Virus record (IMG/VR): IMGVR_UViG_3300030673_000004
Location: 186,001 to 250,000 of that record
Strand: one strand, 5' to 3'
Length of the DNA: 64,000 nt
Part shown: positions 40,714 through 56,532 of the stretch, piece after piece
Layout of the letters: every line of letters begins with the position of its first letter
How positions within the stretch are numbered: position 1 is the first letter of the stretch
Position numbers and translations under genes: made by a program
Notes under the pieces: generated by a model
Told to the model about the DNA's origin: nothing
Databases searched by the model: none
The model's input: the letters and a program-made list of their open reading frames with translations, nothing else

Positions 40714-43641
40714 ATGACTGACGCTAATTCATCTAGAGTTCGCCAAACATGGCAACGTGGGGAGCAGGCCGAGTTCCGTTTCTCTTTTGTTAACTCTTCC
40801 GGTGATGCTTTAGTTCCTTTGGATGCTAATAAATATCCGAATTATGCTTTTGTATCCCCATCGGGTCTTCAGATACAGACAGGGACAGCTCAAGCTTATG
40901 GCACTCCTGGGCAATATCGTGTTTTATGGACAATTCCTCAAGATAGTGAGTTATCTAATGATGAGATGTCCTGGCAGTTACAAGTAAACTTTGTTACGGC
41001 GCGCCGTTCTCAATTAACACATACCTTTGATTTCTTTGTTGTAGACAAGCAGGTAACAGCTACAGGTCGTAAAGATGTTGTAAACTTAGCTATTCAAGGA
41101 TCACCTCATCGTTTGTTTTGGCGTGGTGATTTTGATCCGGCGGAGATTACATTGGAGTGTTATGCCTCTCCCTACGCAGATAACTCTGATCTAGCCCCAA
41201 TTCCACATGCTGCTGCTCTAAATAAATCAGCTCTGACTAAAGTGATAGATGGTGATAGTATAGTTTACTATTATGAGATCCCCTCATCTGCGTTTACTTT
41301 ATGGGATCCTTTGAACAATCTGTATACTGGTCTGTGGTCTGTTCGTGAGACATCTGTATCTGAACTCCAAGTGGAGTATGATCAGTTTCGTGTCATCAAG
41401 AAGCAGATGGTTCAGTACATACAGTCTATTCGTTTCATGGTGGATAGATTCCAGCATAGGTTAGGTACCCCTCAGCATATTAGTGATGGAGATCTCTGCG
41501 AGGCTCTTACGGAGGGCTTGGGCCTGTTTAACGGTTGGTTCCCTGTATCTAACTACAACTGGACTGACTTTCCTATGCAGTGCTCTACATACTGGATTAT
41601 GCTTTCTACTTGGTGGATGCTGAATTCTCAACATATGCTCCAATCACAGCTCGCATTTTCTTTCTGTGTCACTGAGGATACTTATGTGTCTACAAATCGG
41701 GGTCTTGTGCAAGCTAAGTATTTGCGGCCAGGTGCCCTGGAGCATGATGTTCTAAAACTAGTAGCATCTATTGCTTTTCACCCAGATAGAGAAGCTGTTC
41801 TTACTGGTATTATAGCTAATTCTTCTGACATAAAAGACCAGAAATTAGGGTTATCTGAATTAGTTGCTTCTACAGCACCGGAAGTAGCAAGTAATTCAAT
41901 TTTGAGCATGTTTTCCAACTATGAGTTATCTCAGTTTGCCACTCATGATGAGTGGCGTCGTATCTTAATTGATTGTTCAGATGCTTTGTTTACATTTATT
42001 AATGAAACTCTTCTTGCAAATACCATAATCAGCACAAATGCTAAGTTTGACACAAAATTTAAGCTGCTTACACCTTATGGTAGAGATGTTCCTACTTGTG
42101 TTTGGGACCTTGGTGCAAAGCCTGTCTATAGATTAGAAACAGCGCACGGGTACTCTTTGAAAGCAACAGGAAATCACCCGGTATTAGTTTTAGATAAAGA
42201 ACTTAATGTACAAAACAAGAACTTAGCCGATATCTCTGTGGGTGATGTTGTCGCTATATCTAAGCGTCATGACAGTGCTGACGAGGATTGGGATATTGAT
42301 TTATCGTTTTTGGTGGATGCTGTTAATAGATACACAATTAAAGGTGCTAAAAATTACGAACTTCCCAGAAAAATGACTCCTGCCTTAGCTCGGGTACTCG
42401 GCTACATTACGAGTGAGGGCTATATAAATACTGAGGGGATTATATCTTTCTGTAATATAAATCAAATTTTATTAGATGACTACGTTAAAAACTTCACGGA
42501 ATGCTTTGGTGTTGCTCCGAAGTATAAAGGATTTCAGATAAGTAGTGCTGGAAATAAAGTACACTACTACGAAGAATCAAATCGTAAAATAGCCATGTTT
42601 TTGATTGGGTGCGGAGAGCAATTTAAGCAGGCACCTGACAAAGAAATTCCGTGGTCTATCATGGCAGCACCTCGTAGGTTAGCTCGTGAATTTATTCAAG
42701 CCTTTTTTGAGGGAGATGGGTCTTATACATCATATGATACGTCTAAGCAAAAAGGTAAAACTTTTATGAGCTTTGCATCCTCTAGTACAAAGATGCTAGA
42801 TCAATTTCAAAGCCTGCTGCTTAGATTTGGGATTATTACATCTAAGCATAGATATGCGTCAGCACAAGTTCCGCAAATACATGTACCAAGTTCTGCTATT
42901 GATATCTATGCAGATACCATAGGTTTTTGGTATAAGGGTAGAGATCATAAGCCGCGTGTTCGTTACTATGAGCAAGTAGAAGCATACCCTGAGTTTGTTG
43001 GTACTTATATTAAGTCTCTTTTTTCCGGAGCTAATAAGGGTTGGCATACAGATTCAGAAACAGGTAAAAAGTTTAGAGTGTATTCTGGTTTGACTTTGAA
43101 CGCAACTCAAGCTATTTTTGATAGCCGGTGTCCTACACAGAAAAATCTATTATTCTATTTAGAACAGCGTACAGAGTTGTTAGCTAAGTTAAAGCCTGAC
43201 GTTCTAAAGAAACTTAAGTATTTAGCTGATCTTGACTTTCAGTGGGAATCTGTACACAGTATAGATACACTGGAAACAGAAGAATGCGTTATAGACCCTA
43301 CTCTTCCAGATCGTGATACGGACTTAGCACACCACTTCTATGCTAATGGATTTGTTACCCATAACTCTGGCCAAGCCGTCACGCTAGATTATGATCAGAC
43401 AGGTGCAATTGACTCTGCTATTCAGCGTTTGAGCGAGTGGTTGAATGCACATATTACTCCACAAAAGATTATGATTAGCCGTCAGCGTTCTGGTGTGGGT
43501 AGTTTGGGCATTCGTACTCAGCGTGCTTTTGGTGCATACAACCGTGTTCTCCGGTATGACTCGGCTCGTGGTATTGATTCCAACGTTGGGTTTGAAGGTG
43601 TTCTTAATGCAGCCGCGACTTACGGTATCTTCCTGCCTTAA
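40714..43641 (+). CDS. intein-containing probable virion (neck/adaptor-like) protein; ~408 aa after splicing
   Basis: beta-sandwich-like N-terminus plus helical IRFMVDR...ISDGDL..AL..GL..FN region; exteins rejoin as AFSF/SGQAVTLDYD. Confidence 0.65.
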   Translation: MTDANSSRVRQTWQRGEQAEFRFSFVNSSGDALVPLDANKYPNYAFVSPSGLQIQTGTAQAYGTPGQYRVLWTIPQDSELSNDEMSWQLQVNFVTARRSQLTHTFDFFVVDKQVTATGRKDVVNLAIQGSPHRLFWRGDFDPAEITLECYASPYADNSDLAPIPHAAALNKSALTKVIDGDSIVYYYEIPSSAFTLWDPLNNLYTGLWSVRETSVSELQVEYDQFRVIKKQMVQYIQSIRFMVDRFQHRLGTPQHISDGDLCEALTEGLGLFNGWFPVSNYNWTDFPMQCSTYWIMLSTWWMLNSQHMLQSQLAFSFCVTEDTYVSTNRGLVQAKYLRPGALEHDVLKLVASIAFHPDREAVLTGIIANSSDIKDQKLGLSELVASTAPEVASNSILSMFSNYELSQFATHDEWRRILIDCSDALFTFINETLLANTIISTNAKFDTKFKLLTPYGRDVPTCVWDLGAKPVYRLETAHGYSLKATGNHPVLVLDKELNVQNKNLADISVGDVVAISKRHDSADEDWDIDLSFLVDAVNRYTIKGAKNYELPRKMTPALARVLGYITSEGYINTEGIISFCNINQILLDDYVKNFTECFGVAPKYKGFQISSAGNKVHYYEESNRKIAMFLIGCGEQFKQAPDKEIPWSIMAAPRRLAREFIQAFFEGDGSYTSYDTSKQKGKTFMSFASSSTKMLDQFQSLLLRFGIITSKHRYASAQVPQIHVPSSAIDIYADTIGFWYKGRDHKPRVRYYEQVEAYPEFVGTYIKSLFSGANKGWHTDSETGKKFRVYSGLTLNATQAIFDSRCPTQKNLLFYLEQRTELLAKLKPDVLKKLKYLADLDFQWESVHSIDTLETEECVIDPTLPDRDTDLAHHFYANGFVTHNSGQAVTLDYDQTGAIDSAIQRLSEWLNAHITPQKIMISRQRSGVGSLGIRTQRAFGAYNRVLRYDSARGIDSNVGFEGVLNAAATYGIFLP
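41665..43365 (+). mobile_element. intein with LAGLIDADG homing endonuclease (C318-N884, 567 aa)
   Basis: block A CVTEDTYV, block B LKATGNHPV, LARVLGYITSEG and FIQAFFEGDGS, block G FYANGFVTHN/S. Confidence 0.93.
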
Positions 43642-49366: not shown

Positions 49367-49468
49367 TTGACATTTTTGGCTTTGCTTGTATATTTCGTAA
49401 TACGAAGCAGTTGGTTAGCGAATTACCTCCTGTTCGCTCTTTGACAGTGTGTGTTTGTACCTAGTGCG
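49367..49468 (+). promoter_or_regulatory. CRISPR promoter and leader
   Basis: TTGACA(49367-49372)-N16-TATATT(49389-49394), next to the most conserved repeats. Confidence 0.7.
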
Positions 49469-50013
49469 GTAGCACTTTGTACCCATGTGTGAATTGAAAC
49501 AAGTATGACCATGCATGCCGACAGCTTGAGGCGGGTAGCACTTTGTACCCATGTGTGAATTGAAACCGAGTATACCCTCGATCCCACCCAAGCTCCTTCG
49601 TAGCACTTTGTACCCATGTGTGAATTGAAACGAGGTATTGTCTTAATAAGGCATTAGCTAATGGGTAGCACTTTGTACCCATGTGTGAATTGAAACTCGC
49701 TGACAGGCTTAACGACGTTGGATCGCCCGTAGCATTTTGTACCCATGTGTGAATTGAAACTTCTCGACAGCCGCTCCGACAATTCCTGACAAGTAGCACT
49801 TTGCATCCCTGTGTGACTTGAAACAACGCTAGGTCGTGCGAGAGGCTTTGGCCAGAGTAGCATTTTGTACCCATGTGTGAATTGAAACATGGCGGCAGAT
49901 TAGTTGGCGGAGAAATTTGGGTAGTACTTTGTACCCCTGTGTGGATTGAAACTCTTACAGTTCGCATATCTGGATTGACATCCAGGAGCTTGTACCCATG
50001 TGTGAATTGAAAC
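49469..50013 (+). CRISPR. CRISPR array, 9 repeats and 8 spacers (32-34 bp)
   Basis: repeat GTAGCACTTTGTACCCATGTGTGAATTGAAAC at 49469, 49535, 49600, 49665 (identical), 49729, 49793, 49857, 49921 (variants) and 49985 (3-nt deletion). Confidence 0.97.
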
Positions 50014-50308: not shown

Positions 50309-52225
50309 TTGGCTATTCGCAAAAAGACTCCAATCTTGGGCGCTGCTCCGGGTGATGTGCGAACGACTAAGTCCTATAAGTTTGAGCTGTATCCAACAAA
50401 AGATCAGAGAGACAAGTTGTTTACTTTTCTTTGGGCAACTCGGTGCATGTACAATGATGCGCTTGAATGGTTGTTTACGGATAAGATGCTGTTTGATATG
50501 GGTGACATTGACGTGTGGCTAGAGCATCGCGTACTGGCTCTTCTTAGTGATACTGAGAAGAAACAAGCTATTCTTACTTTGGAGTTGGAAGAGCTGCAAA
50601 AACGGCCAGGCACACAATGTAAACAAAATAAGATTCTGGATAGCCTAGAGAAGATGCGTGGCAAACATGATACGTTTGTTTTAGGTTTAGCAAAAATGCG
50701 CACAGAATATGAGAAAAAGATCTGGCCACGTCTCTCTAGAGAGGACATGACTGTTCTTGCTGGTGCTATTCGGCGCTTGAATAAGTCACACCCTGCTTAT
50801 GACGCAAGTTTGGGAATTCCAGCGACTACATTTAATTCGACAGTAGCCAAACGCCTTAGCCAAGCACAGAAAAGCATTTACACGTCAGATCGTCTTTCTA
50901 AGAAAGACGGCAACTTTCTTGTTTCTCGTAGACGTGAATCTACTAAAACACACATTGTTACGTACACAGATCCGGAATCTGTTCAAAAGGTAGAGAACTT
51001 CCCGAATTTCAGATCTCGTACCTCTAGCTTTATTTTAGAGGCGCAGAAACCTTCCGCATTTATCAATGGTAAACTAGGTAATCTTAAGATTACCCCTGCA
51101 CTTACTGTTCAATTTTGTGCTTATGTTGACATTCTCACGGGATCAGCCAAAGAAATTACACAGGCTATCTCAGCTAGGCGTGTTATTGGGATGTCCGTAG
51201 GTCAACAGATTACTGTAGCAGTTGATGGTACTGGGCGTTGGTGGACTAGTATTACTATTGATACCAACCATAGTCCTGTGTTGTATCCTGTTGACATTAA
51301 TAAAACTATGGCACTTGATTTTCGTCCAGCCGCTATTACAACTAGTACCGGATTCCGGATGATGCGGAGTCTTGATGCTCTTCGTTCTGTAACTAGCTAT
51401 CCTAATTGTGCCGCTCTGGCTAAGAAGTATGAAAAGAATCAAAACGCTATTGTCATGAAGCAGCGTGAGGTTTCTCGTAAGTATGAGCTGCATAAGCGAG
51501 CTAGCCAGACGTTCAAGACTACACACGTTTGTCCTATTTGTGGCGCAGTTGCCTCAGACGAAGCTGTTGCTGATCTTAACACTTTTAAGTGTTCTTGTGG
51601 GTTCTCCGTGAGGATGAAATCTAAGAATCATCGTAAAGCCAAGTTTGAGCTATCTATGTTGCATGCTCGTAGTGCTGGTATACTGACAAACTTAAGACGG
51701 CACATTGTGCATTCCTGGGTAGCATCAGAAGCAACTACATTTGTCATTCAAGATATTCCTTTGAACGAAGGTTTCAAGGCAAAGGCAAAGACAAAGAAAG
51801 ATGGGGAGAAGGACAAAGATAAGAAGCCTCGCAGATGGCGTGGCTGCGCTATCCGACGGCGCAATATCAACAGGTTCACACATCAGCTAGCTGCTGGAAC
51901 ATTGCGTAGCATGCTTGTTGCGTCTGCTGCTACTATGCAGAAGAACGTGATCGTGGTCTCTTCTGACTATGATCCTCTGCACACCTGTAGCTGCGGTCAT
52001 GTTATTTCTACTGGTGCTACAATGTGTGATGATGTTGTTGCTAATGCACCTACCCGTCTACTGTATATTCCGTTTGATCACCCAAAACTTGTTCTTGGAG
52101 CTAAGTCAGGAACGGATGCTTTACGCAGATTTGGTGAAGCATTAACTCAGAAAGAAGCCCGTAAGCAAGCTAAGTTACTGCGAAAGGCTGCGTTGACTTC
52201 TGGCCAGGGGATTGCTGTTGATTAA
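50309..52225 (+). CDS. TnpB/Cas12f-like type V effector, RuvC-II Glu replaced by Gln
   Basis: KSYKFELYPTKDQ...TRCMYNDAL (IS605 OrfB-like N-terminus); RuvC-I MALD337; SKNHRKAK..L..LH helix; RuvC-II FVIQ481D; candidate RuvC-III D574/D575; GGAGA RBS. Confidence 0.85.
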   Translation: MAIRKKTPILGAAPGDVRTTKSYKFELYPTKDQRDKLFTFLWATRCMYNDALEWLFTDKMLFDMGDIDVWLEHRVLALLSDTEKKQAILTLELEELQKRPGTQCKQNKILDSLEKMRGKHDTFVLGLAKMRTEYEKKIWPRLSREDMTVLAGAIRRLNKSHPAYDASLGIPATTFNSTVAKRLSQAQKSIYTSDRLSKKDGNFLVSRRRESTKTHIVTYTDPESVQKVENFPNFRSRTSSFILEAQKPSAFINGKLGNLKITPALTVQFCAYVDILTGSAKEITQAISARRVIGMSVGQQITVAVDGTGRWWTSITIDTNHSPVLYPVDINKTMALDFRPAAITTSTGFRMMRSLDALRSVTSYPNCAALAKKYEKNQNAIVMKQREVSRKYELHKRASQTFKTTHVCPICGAVASDEAVADLNTFKCSCGFSVRMKSKNHRKAKFELSMLHARSAGILTNLRRHIVHSWVASEATTFVIQDIPLNEGFKAKAKTKKDGEKDKDKKPRRWRGCAIRRRNINRFTHQLAAGTLRSMLVASAATMQKNVIVVSSDYDPLHTCSCGHVISTGATMCDDVVANAPTRLLYIPFDHPKLVLGAKSGTDALRRFGEALTQKEARKQAKLLRKAALTSGQGIAVD

Positions 52226-52226
52226 A

Positions 52227-54399
52227 GTGAAAAAGCTTCGCAAGTATCAGGAAGAGACACTTACGTGGGCTTTCCATGTACTGGCTAATCCGCAGCGTCC
52301 ACATTTGTTGATTGGGCAGCCACCGGGTGCAGGAAAGTCTATGCAGGCCCATTTGATTAGTCGGTTTGCTCTGGAATGTCCTAGTCTAGGGATCAAGAAA
52401 ATTCTGGTACTGACACCATTGATAGCAATCCGTTTTGGGTTTGCACGTGATCGGGACTACGGCGTAACGTATACGTCTGACTCGTTTAGCTGGCTTCAGA
52501 ACGGTGGCGTTCGGCCACTAGACTTTCAGACAACAGATGGTGCTCTTCTAGCTATGCTGCAGACAGATCGTGTGGGTGCCTATATTGCATGTCACGCATC
52601 TTTGGCTAACGCAAAAGCTGAAGATGCTCATGCTTTTGAGCAGTTGGACGACTGCTCAGATTTACTTATTGTAGTTGATGAAGCACATCACCTTAATGCT
52701 GAATAACCTGACGAGTGTCGTACAGTGTGCTGTAGATAAAGGTGCTCGAATGCTGCTACTGACAGCAACGCCGTTTGTATCTACCGGTTCGTGGGAGTTC
52801 ATCTTAAAGAATAAGACAAAGTCTCGTATACGTCCGCTTAGTCAGCATATTGAAGAAGGCTTTGCACCTCGCCTGGAAAATGAGATCATCTATAGCGATA
52901 TCTGGCCTATGGAGAACGGACTCCCTTCGCCTGAGTTTGTGGCACGTAAAACGATTGAGACGTTTTTAGCAAATGATCGAGTCAAGAGTCTTGTTGTTGT
53001 ACCTGCTACACCGTCATGCCGGGCTTGCGGTACAACGGAGGAATACGTCGATAAGATCATAGACGAGTGCTACAAACTTGTGCCACGTACAGATATTTCT
53101 TTGTTGAATACTCTGGGCGATTCTAAGACAGATATTATCACCAAAGAGTGCCGTGGTGATACCTATCACGATATTCAATTCACGCCAACCACAGGCAAAT
53201 ACCGTGAGGGTGTGGATGATCCCAGGCTAGCCTGTATTCAATACTTTGTTCGTCCGAAGTCCTCTATTCTTAGCGTTCAGATTCCGGGTAGGACTCTTCG
53301 CGAGAAACCTGAAGGATATCTGCCTGTGCAGTTTAGATTTAAGTCTAAACAGATATTCCATACTTCTTCGGCTGCTGGCGCCCTGATAGAATTTTCCTGT
53401 GATGTTCTAAAGTACATTCTCCGAACAGAGAATCCTTTAGCTGCTGCTACTCTGCCACCAATCAAAGCTATGATCGGCGAACTGCGTATGCGCAGGCGGC
53501 AAGCAGACAATTCAGGTGATATTAAATTAGCACAAAGTTATGCTGAATTTGCGGATGCCTTGGAAGATGACGCTGAAACAACTATGTGTGAGGCTCTTGC
53601 CGACTTAGATGCTCAAGTTACGCTGGCCTATGAGACTCAGCAAGGAGTAACTCTTCCTAAGCTAATTCAGCAGTATGGAATGGACTCAAACGTTGTTAAA
53701 TTGGCTATGTATCAACAGCTTAAGAATCATCCTGATAAGTTATTGGAGCACATGGAGTCTATCATTGAACGGCGTACACGAAATCACAAAGGCGGAAAGC
53801 ATAAGCCGGGAAGTACGCCGTCATTTGAGATTGCCGACTTTTACCTTCATATGCTTGCAGAGCAGTATGCTGATGAAGAAATAGATCAGTTTGTGACAAC
53901 TATTGATAGTCGCGTTTTGACCGAGTGGTCTGATCGCTGGGAGAAACTTAGAGACAGGACAGATCTGGAAAAAGCTGACGGTCTAGTTCAGGCTTTCAGC
54001 ACGGGTAGCCTTCGTCGTGACGATCATATCAACTACCCATCGTTTGAAGAGTTTCGGCTGCGTAATCTGCTCAGTACGGTGCTGCCCGCAGTTAAACGTC
54101 CCAGTTTAGAGGCTCGTGCGCTGTTAGATGCTGCTGGGTTGTCTAGTCGCATTTTTGCTGATAACTGGAATGATCCTCTTGTTTGTAACAATGGTACCTT
54201 GCTAACTCTTCAGCGTTTTGTACCTTTGGCATCTTGGGTGAAGGCGCATGGAAGGCTACCCCAGATTTCTTCTGATCTAGAAGAGAGGTCCGCCTATAAA
54301 TTCTACAGAATCTATAAGGACAAAATGACTGTAGTTGCTTCTCAGCACACTGCTAGTATCATACAGGAACTACATATAGGAGAAGTCTTGGATGCCTAA
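52227..54399 (+). CDS. SF2 (DExH, Res-like) helicase split by a frameshift at ~52704
   Basis: LRKYQ, GQPPGAGKS, VLTP and IVVDEAHH in ORF 52212-52706; LTATP, EGVDDP, QIPGRTLR and HA-like HGRLP in ORF 52675-54399. Confidence 0.85.
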
Positions 54400-55039
54400 G
54401 ACTAAGACAACGTCACCTGAGTTTGTTTATGCTTCTCATGGCAAGCAGGAATACCGCAAGTATGTTCAGGGCCAATTCGATATTCATTCTCTTGGTGATT
54501 TCCATGGTAAGTGGCTTGAGCCCATTGGGGCAGGTGCTTTAACATTTGATTCATTACTAGCAACCGGGCGTATAGATGAAGCTAGCCTGATTGGGTTAGA
54601 CAAGAACCCTAGGGATATTGCAGGATCACGTCAGAACATCGAGCAGTGCCGCACTAAATTCCCAAAAGCTCAGTTCTTCTGTCAAGATTGGCGTGAGTTC
54701 TGTCTACAGTATCGCGATCCAATTAGGTACATCGTTTACGATTTGTATACATCTACTTTTGGGCCGGAGCTTCTAAGCAATTTGCAGGCTATTTTTAGTT
54801 TAGTGCAGCAGAGCTTGAAGTACCATGGTCAAGTTCTTCTCGCTGTAACGGCAGATTTGCAGGCAACTATGCGACATAAGAAAGACGTACAAGACTTTGA
54901 GCATCTGTTGAAACGTGTATTTGAATCACCTACTATTCGGCATAGCCGAATATCCTGTAAAGACATGTTTCTATATACCAGCAATCGCGATCAGATGGGT
55001 GTTTTGATCATTGAATTCTTTAACAATACTGTTCCTTAG
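54392..55039 (+). CDS. putative class I SAM-dependent methyltransferase-fold protein
   Basis: WLEPIGAG (motif I), LIGLDKN, FFCQDW, YIVYDLY; overlaps the helicase stop. Confidence 0.6.
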   Translation: MPKTKTTSPEFVYASHGKQEYRKYVQGQFDIHSLGDFHGKWLEPIGAGALTFDSLLATGRIDEASLIGLDKNPRDIAGSRQNIEQCRTKFPKAQFFCQDWREFCLQYRDPIRYIVYDLYTSTFGPELLSNLQAIFSLVQQSLKYHGQVLLAVTADLQATMRHKKDVQDFEHLLKRVFESPTIRHSRISCKDMFLYTSNRDQMGVLIIEFFNNTVP

Positions 55040-55693: not shown

Positions 55694-55993
55694 ATGTACC
55701 GTACTATTTTTGGCAGTGTAATCTTTGCGTTTGCTCTGGTACACGCCGCAGATAATAAGCCATGGGATTCACAAAATATAGATCCGGTTGCTGTCCAAGC
55801 ATCTGCGAGTTCTTCTTGCTCTGACAGCGCTAAACGAGCATTCAGTCAAGCAATTCAATCTTCCCTGACGAAGAATAACAAGTTCAGTGTTCATCTATTG
55901 ATTCAAAATGGTAAGAAGTACGGTGTGCTTCGTGAAGTTCTGGACTATGTCCAATACTGGAAGCGACAAGATATTGGGATGTTGGAGCAATAA
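55694..55993 (+). CDS. exported hypothetical protein
   Basis: MYRTIFGSVIFAFALVHA signal peptide; AAGGA RBS. Confidence 0.6.
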   Translation: MYRTIFGSVIFAFALVHAADNKPWDSQNIDPVAVQASASSSCSDSAKRAFSQAIQSSLTKNNKFSVHLLIQNGKKYGVLREVLDYVQYWKRQDIGMLEQ

Positions 55994-56532
55994 TGTTTCA
56001 AGTCAAAAAGACAATACAGGCATTGTCTTATTTTTGTAGAGAATCTAATAGTTCTGTCAAGATATCTACGGCTTTAGCTTGGTTGTTTCTTGCCGATGTG
56101 TCACATTTGCGAGAATACGGAAGAACCATATCGGAAGATACTTATATCCGAACAGCTACTGGATTTGAGCCGGTGAGTACTCGTGACCTACTTACTAGGC
56201 ACATCAAGGCATATGTAACTACGCCGGATGTGGTTTACTGTCGTCTGTGTTTGGATGTAACGCCTAATGATGTGGATATACGCAAGGGAGCTATTTGGGA
56301 TACCGATGAGATGTCTGATTCCGATACTCAAGTTCTAGCAACTACTTATTCCGCATATCATAGATTTAGTCGTAGTCAGCTTAGAGCCATTGTTAGGACA
56401 TTTCCAGAATGGCAAGCAGCGCACTTAAAATCTGTAGTATCTGCTGAATTGTTCCTAACAGGTGCTACTGACATAGCAAAAATTCATTTCTATCTAAGTC
56501 TTAGATTTCCTTCTCGACTGGAAATTGTATGA
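55993..56532 (+). CDS. Panacea/SocA-like (DUF4065) antitoxin-domain protein
   Basis: LFLADVSHLREYGRTISEDTY, DEMSDSD...L, FPEW. Confidence 0.7.
   Translation: MFQVKKTIQALSYFCRESNSSVKISTALAWLFLADVSHLREYGRTISEDTYIRTATGFEPVSTRDLLTRHIKAYVTTPDVVYCRLCLDVTPNDVDIRKGAIWDTDEMSDSDTQVLATTYSAYHRFSRSQLRAIVRTFPEWQAAHLKSVVSAELFLTGATDIAKIHFYLSLRFPSRLEIV

Follow-up and report, generated by a model that had tools for sequence, protein, structure and literature searches.

A helicase gene split after its DEAH box in a CRISPR and Cas12-like module of a peat jumbo phage

Introduction

Why does a phage gene for a superfamily 2 (SF2) helicase stop directly after the DEAH box, with the remainder of the enzyme continuing in the +1 frame? 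The gene lies in a window of 64,000 nucleotides, which corresponds to bases 186001–250000 of virus record IMGVR_UViG_3300030673_000004. The record comprises 375,537 bp with direct terminal repeats and is a complete jumbo phage genome. The sequencing runs that hold the phage sequence are peat metagenomes, and the overall G+C content is 42.8%.

A preliminary description of this DNA considered three options for the break: an assembly error, a recent inactivation, and programmed +1 frameshifting at a stop codon. The last of these has well-known precedents. The prfB gene, encoding release factor RF2, undergoes a +1 frameshift at CUU UGA C with an upstream Shine-Dalgarno (SD)-like element, and Listeria phage PSA has +1 sites at CCC-UGA. 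Conservation of the frame break is a hallmark of such genes. We compared the helicase with its homologues, with other assemblies and with known recoding sites, and describe the module in which it resides.

Results

Two halves of one helicase

The first half, ORF1 (52218–52706, plus strand), encodes an N-terminal SF2 helicase fragment of 162–164 amino acids. Its start is uncertain, with candidates at TTG 52212, TTG 52218 (6 nt past a GGGGA sequence), and GTG 52227. The fragment carries a Q-like motif (KYQ), the Walker A sequence GAGKS (motif I), and the DEAH box (motif II), and both motif I and motif II are invariant columns in the alignment of homologues. Frame 0 reads ...LLIVVDEAHHLNAE at its C-terminal end and is closed by TAA 52704–52706 directly after DEAHHLNAE. 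The +1 frame stays open from a TTG codon at 52675 to 54399, reads ...NNLTSVVQCAVDKGARMLLLTATPF, and has ATG codons at 52678 and 52696. From the second ATG, ORF2 (52696–54399, plus strand) encodes the remaining 567 amino acids of the helicase in a protein that begins with MLNNLTSVVQCAVDKGARMLLLTATPF. It contains motif III (TATP), followed by motifs V (EGVDDP) and VI (QIPGRTLR) in a second RecA lobe (RecA2) and by a helical C-terminal region of ~300 residues. The preliminary description, which placed a +1 frame change right after the DEAH box and motif III about 20 codons farther on, agrees with the coordinates and the sequence; the T of TATP lies ~19–20 codons past the frame 0 stop.

ORF2 has no stop in its 567 codons, compared with 30 and 59 in the other two frames and an average of 31.7 in shuffled sequences. 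Past TAA 52704–52706, frame 0 contains 58 more stops, and stop read-through is therefore unable to rescue the helicase gene. Across the genome, ORFs of at least 200 amino acids end in TAA (99), TGA (70), or TAG (32), which indicates that the standard code applies. Stop-codon reassignment is ruled out by this use of all three stops and by the 58 further stops in frame 0. When one base is skipped at the break (written as TAAC = N, which is only a reading device and makes no claim on the genetic code), the read-through from TTG 52218 is 726 amino acids long. It has 23 residues between DEAHH and TATP, compared with 23–24 in the homologues, in agreement with the helicase of ~725 residues and normal motif spacing that had been proposed.

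The Pfam profile ResIII (PF04851) matches ORF1 alone at profile positions 3–139 of 164 (E = 9.5e-7, above the cut-off) and the 726-residue read-through at positions 3–163 of 164 (E = 2.8e-9). No Pfam, PHROG, or NCBIfam profile matched ORF2; distant relatives of the helicase match Helicase_C at the corresponding place of the second lobe. Apart from motifs I and II in ORF1, the features expected of an SF2 enzyme include motif III at normal spacing and motifs V and VI in the second RecA lobe (invariant as EG.D and Q..GR..R), all of which are present in ORF2. The feature that is absent is a single continuous frame through both lobes. A search of the 375-kb phage genome with the homologous helicase P0003 returned two pieces, matching P0003 residues 4–170 and 167–686, and no second helicase copy. 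ORF1 and ORF2 are two halves of one helicase.

Profile comparison with the PDB and Foldseek searches gave the Type ISP enzymes LlaBIII/LlaGI, RadD, XPB, HsdR, and Snf2/Chd1 as the nearest known proteins. The likeness consists of a ResIII/DEAH N-lobe and a RecA2 lobe with motifs V and VI, and the searches place the helicase among the SF2 dsDNA translocases. In contrast to those enzymes, with which it shares 10–19% identity and TM scores of ~0.3–0.4, the phage helicase has an unmatched helical C-terminal region, carries no fused nuclease or methylase domain, and is encoded in two frames. A single-sequence AlphaFold model of ORF2 was unusable (pLDDT 38).

Homologues and the ancestral gene

An exhaustive HMMER protein search with the helicase found nine other proteins. 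The closest full-length ones are P0002 (705 amino acids, E = 2.6e-60), P0003 (713 amino acids, E = 2.2e-55), and P0005 (731 amino acids, E = 1.7e-20), each of which is ~30% identical to the phage protein. All three are single ORFs that are colinear with it across the break, their residues 168–173 aligning to residue 3 of ORF2. The more distant P0006 is also a single ORF, and P0004 (~30% identical) is a C-terminal fragment. In a five-sequence alignment, all 51 invariant columns, among them Walker A, DEAHH, TATP, EG.D, and Q..GR..R, are kept in the two pieces of the phage protein. Together with the stop-free ORF2, this bears out the view that both halves are otherwise intact.

Because the homologues are single ORFs, the ancestral gene was one ORF of ~705–731 codons, and because the full-length close relatives found, all ~30% identical, are unbroken at this site, the break is specific to the lineage of this phage. 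The preliminary description had suggested a comparison of homologues as a check, and the intact, colinear full-length proteins favour ordinary inactivation over recoding.

Close relatives that cover the junction at 50–99% identity were sought by several routes, and none was found. Megablast and tblastn searches against phage records gave nothing beyond the phage itself, nor did scans of IMG/VR by protein and by profile, and a JGI metagenome scan gave only its own contig. When ORF2 or a junction-spanning piece of the read-through served as the query, word searches returned only the phage's own proteins, and a CRISPR repeat-pattern scan for relatives yielded one chance match inside an ORF. Among bacteria, the proteins nearest to the helicase core (27% identity) come from an Isosphaeraceae MAG and a Paludisphaera sp. 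MAG (L010 and L011). Both are peat-type Planctomycetota, which may give a hint of the host lineage.

Position of the lesion

The alignment of ORF1 with the N-termini of the homologues extends to DEAHHL, and that of the +1 frame begins at NN(S)LT. Frame 0 matches through DEAHH and probably also through the following L, and in the +1 frame AAT AAC CTG ACG (NNLT) agrees with NNSLT in the two closest homologues. Therefore, the indel, either one extra nucleotide or two missing ones, should lie in a break zone at ~52692–52707 (plus strand). The break had been assigned to GAA-TAA-C. Frame 0 does end there, but the homologue alignment bounds the indel only to this wider zone. Similarly, a loss of AA from GAA AAT AAC had been offered as an example of the lesion. 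Restoring the two bases gives 24 residues from DEAHH to TATP and an ungapped alignment, as in P0002, P0003, and P0005, but skipping one base gives 23 residues, as in P0006, and a 1-nt insertion fits equally well. Judged from the alignment, a 1-nt insertion and a 2-nt deletion are equally possible.

An AlphaFold model of P0003 built with an alignment has a mean pLDDT of 65, with values of 70–95 in the core. In this model, the position equivalent to the break falls inside the first RecA lobe (RecA1), in a loop between the strand of motif II (residues 159–164) and a helix (174–184) that precedes the motif III strand (188–193).

The predicted loop position is consistent with a functional helicase made of two separate chains, in which ORF1 (motifs Q, I, and II) and ORF2 (motif III onward) would reassemble RecA1 non-covalently. 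ORF2 would then start at ATG 52696, where the gene callers also place its start. The overlap between this ATG and the ORF1 stop is 11 nt, close to the 8 nt by which ORF2 overlaps the next gene of the operon, so that termination-reinitiation at the overlapping TAA is conceivable. The fully open ORF2 with all its invariant residues would suit such an arrangement. On the other hand, there is no SD sequence ahead of either ATG (52678 or 52696), and by a rough estimate a start codon would occur by chance within a 10-codon overlap in ~4 of 10 cases. None of the relatives found is split at this point, and we know of no precedent for separating motifs II and III by a cut within the RecA1 core. We consider a two-chain enzyme unlikely, with a modest chance of being correct.

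Reality of the break

The frameshift is real DNA. The 2,188-nt helicase region is 100% identical in an ENA megahit assembly (L002), a Logan assembly of another run (L003), and JGI contig Ga0302286_10000002 (L009); the first two are also identical to the window over 8.5–9.7 kb around the helicase. The exact ORF2 protein occurs on 10 contigs, nine of which exceed 200 kb, and each of four peat runs holds all of the sampled sequence words. An 11.9-kb Logan contig passes unbroken through the site, at which there is no homopolymer.

A sequencing or assembly artefact that hides a continuous ORF in the true genome deserves mention because the record is a metagenome assembly and the comparison was made with assembled contigs. 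However, the identical sequence comes from three assembly pipelines and several peat samples. Given these identical independent assemblies and the lack of a homopolymer, we regard the assembly error suggested earlier as extremely improbable. As the comparison concerned assembled contigs, a minority intact allele may be present in the samples.

All Logan contigs that overlap the site are identical to the window, and X5–X7 contributed identical low-coverage fragments. One of these, X7, is a wastewater run, whose fragments within window positions 51200–54400 are identical to the peat phage. In the same interval, a freshwater run (X9) holds a strain at 97–100% identity and a relative at ~85%, and none of its diverged Logan contigs covers 52608–53100. 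The listed differences of the ~85% relative are mostly at third codon positions, and in the strain at 97–100% identity 9 nt are inserted after 52024, within the Cas12-like gene described below.

Recoding signals at the site

Programmed +1 frameshifting at GAA-TAA-C, or nearby (for example at CTT-A), would produce a low, regulated amount of full-length helicase, with the 164-residue stub as the main product. The site resembles those of prfB and Listeria phage PSA in that frame 0 is closed by an in-frame stop followed by C, which provides a slow A site, and in that the protein continues in the +1 frame, here open and conserved. The stop followed by C is the only recoding-typical feature at the site.

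In clear contrast to prfB, the helicase site lacks a P-site codon that allows re-pairing, since tRNA-Glu moving from GAA to AAU keeps one of three base pairs; the alternative slip at CTT-A keeps two of three. A purine-rich SD-like stimulator is absent from the 20 nt upstream, including the interval 3–6 nt before the site, and several neighbouring genes have clear GGAG sites. The 141 nt around the site fold no better than shuffled sequences (z = +0.94). Furthermore, the break is not conserved, as P0002, P0003, P0005, and P0006 are all single ORFs in this comparison among distant relatives.

An 8-nt anticodon loop for quadruplet reading was found in none of the 34 phage tRNAs, whose genes are clustered at G000:C1:91533–117819 of the phage genome, outside the window. 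An odd 96-nt tRNA-like gene at 92265–92360 combines a long variable arm with an anticodon loop of 6 nt (Lys/Stop, 'tt', according to ARAGORN); an alternative reading is Pro(cgg) with an intron of 7 nt. Its possible four-base readings mismatch the site, and we rejected quadruplet decoding. Translational bypass (hopping) was also rejected, since residues conserved in the homologues would be lost from the product and there is no matching landing codon leading into the open frame. Transcriptional slippage is ruled out because the site has no homopolymer in the form of an A or T run. With continuous homologues and neither re-pairing, an SD-like stimulator, nor RNA structure, the frameshifting option finds no positive support, and we judge it very unlikely.

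The helicase belongs to a CRISPR and Cas12-like module

The preliminary description had not recognized that the helicase gene is part of a CRISPR/Cas12-like module. The CRISPR array (49469–50013, plus strand) consists of nine 32-nt repeats ending in ...GAATTGAAAC, the last of which is degenerate, and eight spacers of 29–34 nt. A 168-residue minus-strand ORF in the ENA annotation (49461–49967) lies wholly over the array and is probably spurious. The Cas12/TnpB-like gene (50309–52225, plus strand) encodes 638 amino acids, and its stop overlaps the helicase start. Downstream of the helicase, a third gene (54392–55039, plus strand) overlaps the ORF2 stop by the 8 nt mentioned above and encodes a conserved protein of 215 amino acids that shows only a weak methyltransferase-like signal. 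A 179-residue SocA/Panacea antitoxin-like protein is encoded 1 kb downstream of the module, at window positions 55993–56532, and a Panacea-domain gene is also found near the distant helicase homologue P0006.

The array adjoining the effector gene is as expected of a type V locus. The Cas12-like protein has an HTH_OrfB_IS605 N-terminus and a putative TNB zinc-finger region, and in these features, in its weak matches to Cas12f, Cas12u, and TnpB, and in the adjacent array, it resembles TnpB and the effectors of types V-F and V-U. It differs from them in that all of these matches fall below the curated cut-offs and in that the position of the RuvC-II glutamate is occupied by Q (T in L007) in all four proteins of a shallow alignment. 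In the same shallow alignment, the RuvC-I and RuvC-III positions vary between D and H and between D and N, respectively. Because these RuvC positions are non-canonical, nuclease competence is uncertain; a nuclease-dead effector and one with a shifted triad are both conceivable.

The order of array, Cas12-like gene, helicase gene, and ~215-residue gene recurs at the loci of P0002 (L004 and L005), P0003 (L006), and P0005 (L007 and L008). In these loci, the Cas12-like gene encodes 589–621 amino acids and the third gene ~220. In L004, L006, L007, and L008, the module is preceded by a related array, which has 16 repeats in L006, and the related repeats of these loci end in ...GGATTGAAAC, ...GAATTGTAAC, and ...GAGTTGAAGG. 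The module proteins of the four lineages are only 23–46% identical. The distant P0006 locus keeps the helicase gene and a gene for 214 amino acids and has no Cas12-like gene. Two of these loci also contain an intein-containing gene (Intein_splicing, LAGLIDADG_3; 975–979 amino acids) ~1.3–1.7 kb downstream of the module (L004:6179–9106 and L006:6596–9535), and the window has a 975-residue ORF upstream of the module, at 40714–43641.

The module is similar to the type I system with Cas3 and the type IV-A system with CasDinG in combining an array, an RNA-guided effector gene, and a dedicated SF2 motor in one operon, and in having no adaptation genes; no Cas1 was found in the phage genome. In contrast to those systems, the phage effector is a single Cas12/TnpB-like protein (class 2) and not a Cascade-like complex, and the helicase matches Cas3 and DinG models only marginally (E = 3e-4 to 1.5e-3). 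The literature that we searched describes helicases with type I, type IV, and a huge-phage type I-C variant, and contains no description of a helicase with a type V effector. The operon of array, Cas12-like gene, helicase, and ~215-residue gene is conserved and apparently undescribed. For the two spacers that were searched, no protospacers were found, and there were no self-matches.

Breaks in other lineages

Module genes are also disrupted elsewhere. In L004, where the helicase (P0002) is intact, the Cas12-like gene is split over two frames (L004:936–1066), with a run of six G at 1017–1022 within the frame overlap. In L019, a 1.2-kb contig seen in two samples that encodes P0004, an in-frame TGA (L019:41–43) occurs just past motif VI of the helicase, after QLVGRILRPKPI, and the remaining frame is open. 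Thus, three of five lineages, including that of the window, have a disrupted module gene, two of these three cases resting on single short contigs. Different breaks in several lineages are most simply read as frequent knock-outs of a dispensable accessory locus, and the pattern suggests that the module decays sporadically.

In four-taxon trees, the terminal branch of the helicase is 1.32 for the window, compared with 0.78 for L004 and 0.60 for L006. The corresponding values are 0.69, 0.72, and 0.90 for the Cas12-like protein and 0.73, 0.59, and 0.50 for the third gene. Relative to the neighbouring genes, the helicase branch of the window is ~1.5–2 times longer than those of L004 and L006, which is a weak hint of faster helicase evolution, drawn from four highly diverged taxa.

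Discussion

The evidence favours recent inactivation among the options first considered, as the homologues are intact, the break is present in real DNA, and recoding signals are missing. We think it probable that a recent 1-nt insertion or 2-nt deletion within 52692–52707 inactivated the helicase gene. A small, lineage-specific indel would have broken a formerly continuous ORF for an SF2 (ResIII/DEAH) ATPase-translocase of ~725 amino acids, presumably in the RecA1 loop that comes after the strand of motif II. Ribosomes initiating at the helicase start would terminate at TAA 52704–52706 and yield a stub of 162–164 residues that has neither motif III nor RecA2, so that the helicase is most likely inactive and its gene a young pseudogene. 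The event would be recent, as the downstream frame of 567 codons and every family-invariant residue are still intact. We infer both the loss of function and the recency of the break. A likely consequence would be a loss of, or a change in, the contribution of this motor to the RNA-guided system.

Two observations count against inactivation. A wholly open ORF2 with all 51 invariant positions kept would also be expected of a gene still in use, and the overlap of ATG 52696 with the ORF1 stop, like that of coupled genes of the operon, means that ORF2 could be translated. It is conceivable, and in our opinion rather improbable, that the helicase serves as the motor of a so far undescribed, helicase-associated type V-like CRISPR module of huge phages, whose Cas12-like protein has a non-canonical RuvC, and is still made despite the break, either as two chains with a restart at ATG 52696 or through low-level +1 frameshifting at GAA-TAA-C, with the break tuning the system instead of abolishing it.

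On the preferred reading of a recent inactivation, nothing about the frameshift is unusual: an accessory locus has suffered a young gene break, which should not be catalogued as recoding. The broken helicase is of interest as a pointer to a rare, conserved phage operon that joins a CRISPR array, a Cas12/TnpB-like protein, and an SF2 translocase. Should the module prove functional, it would represent a class 2 counterpart to interference assisted by Cas3 or DinG, and the phage with the broken helicase and L004 with the broken effector gene would provide natural loss-of-function comparisons.
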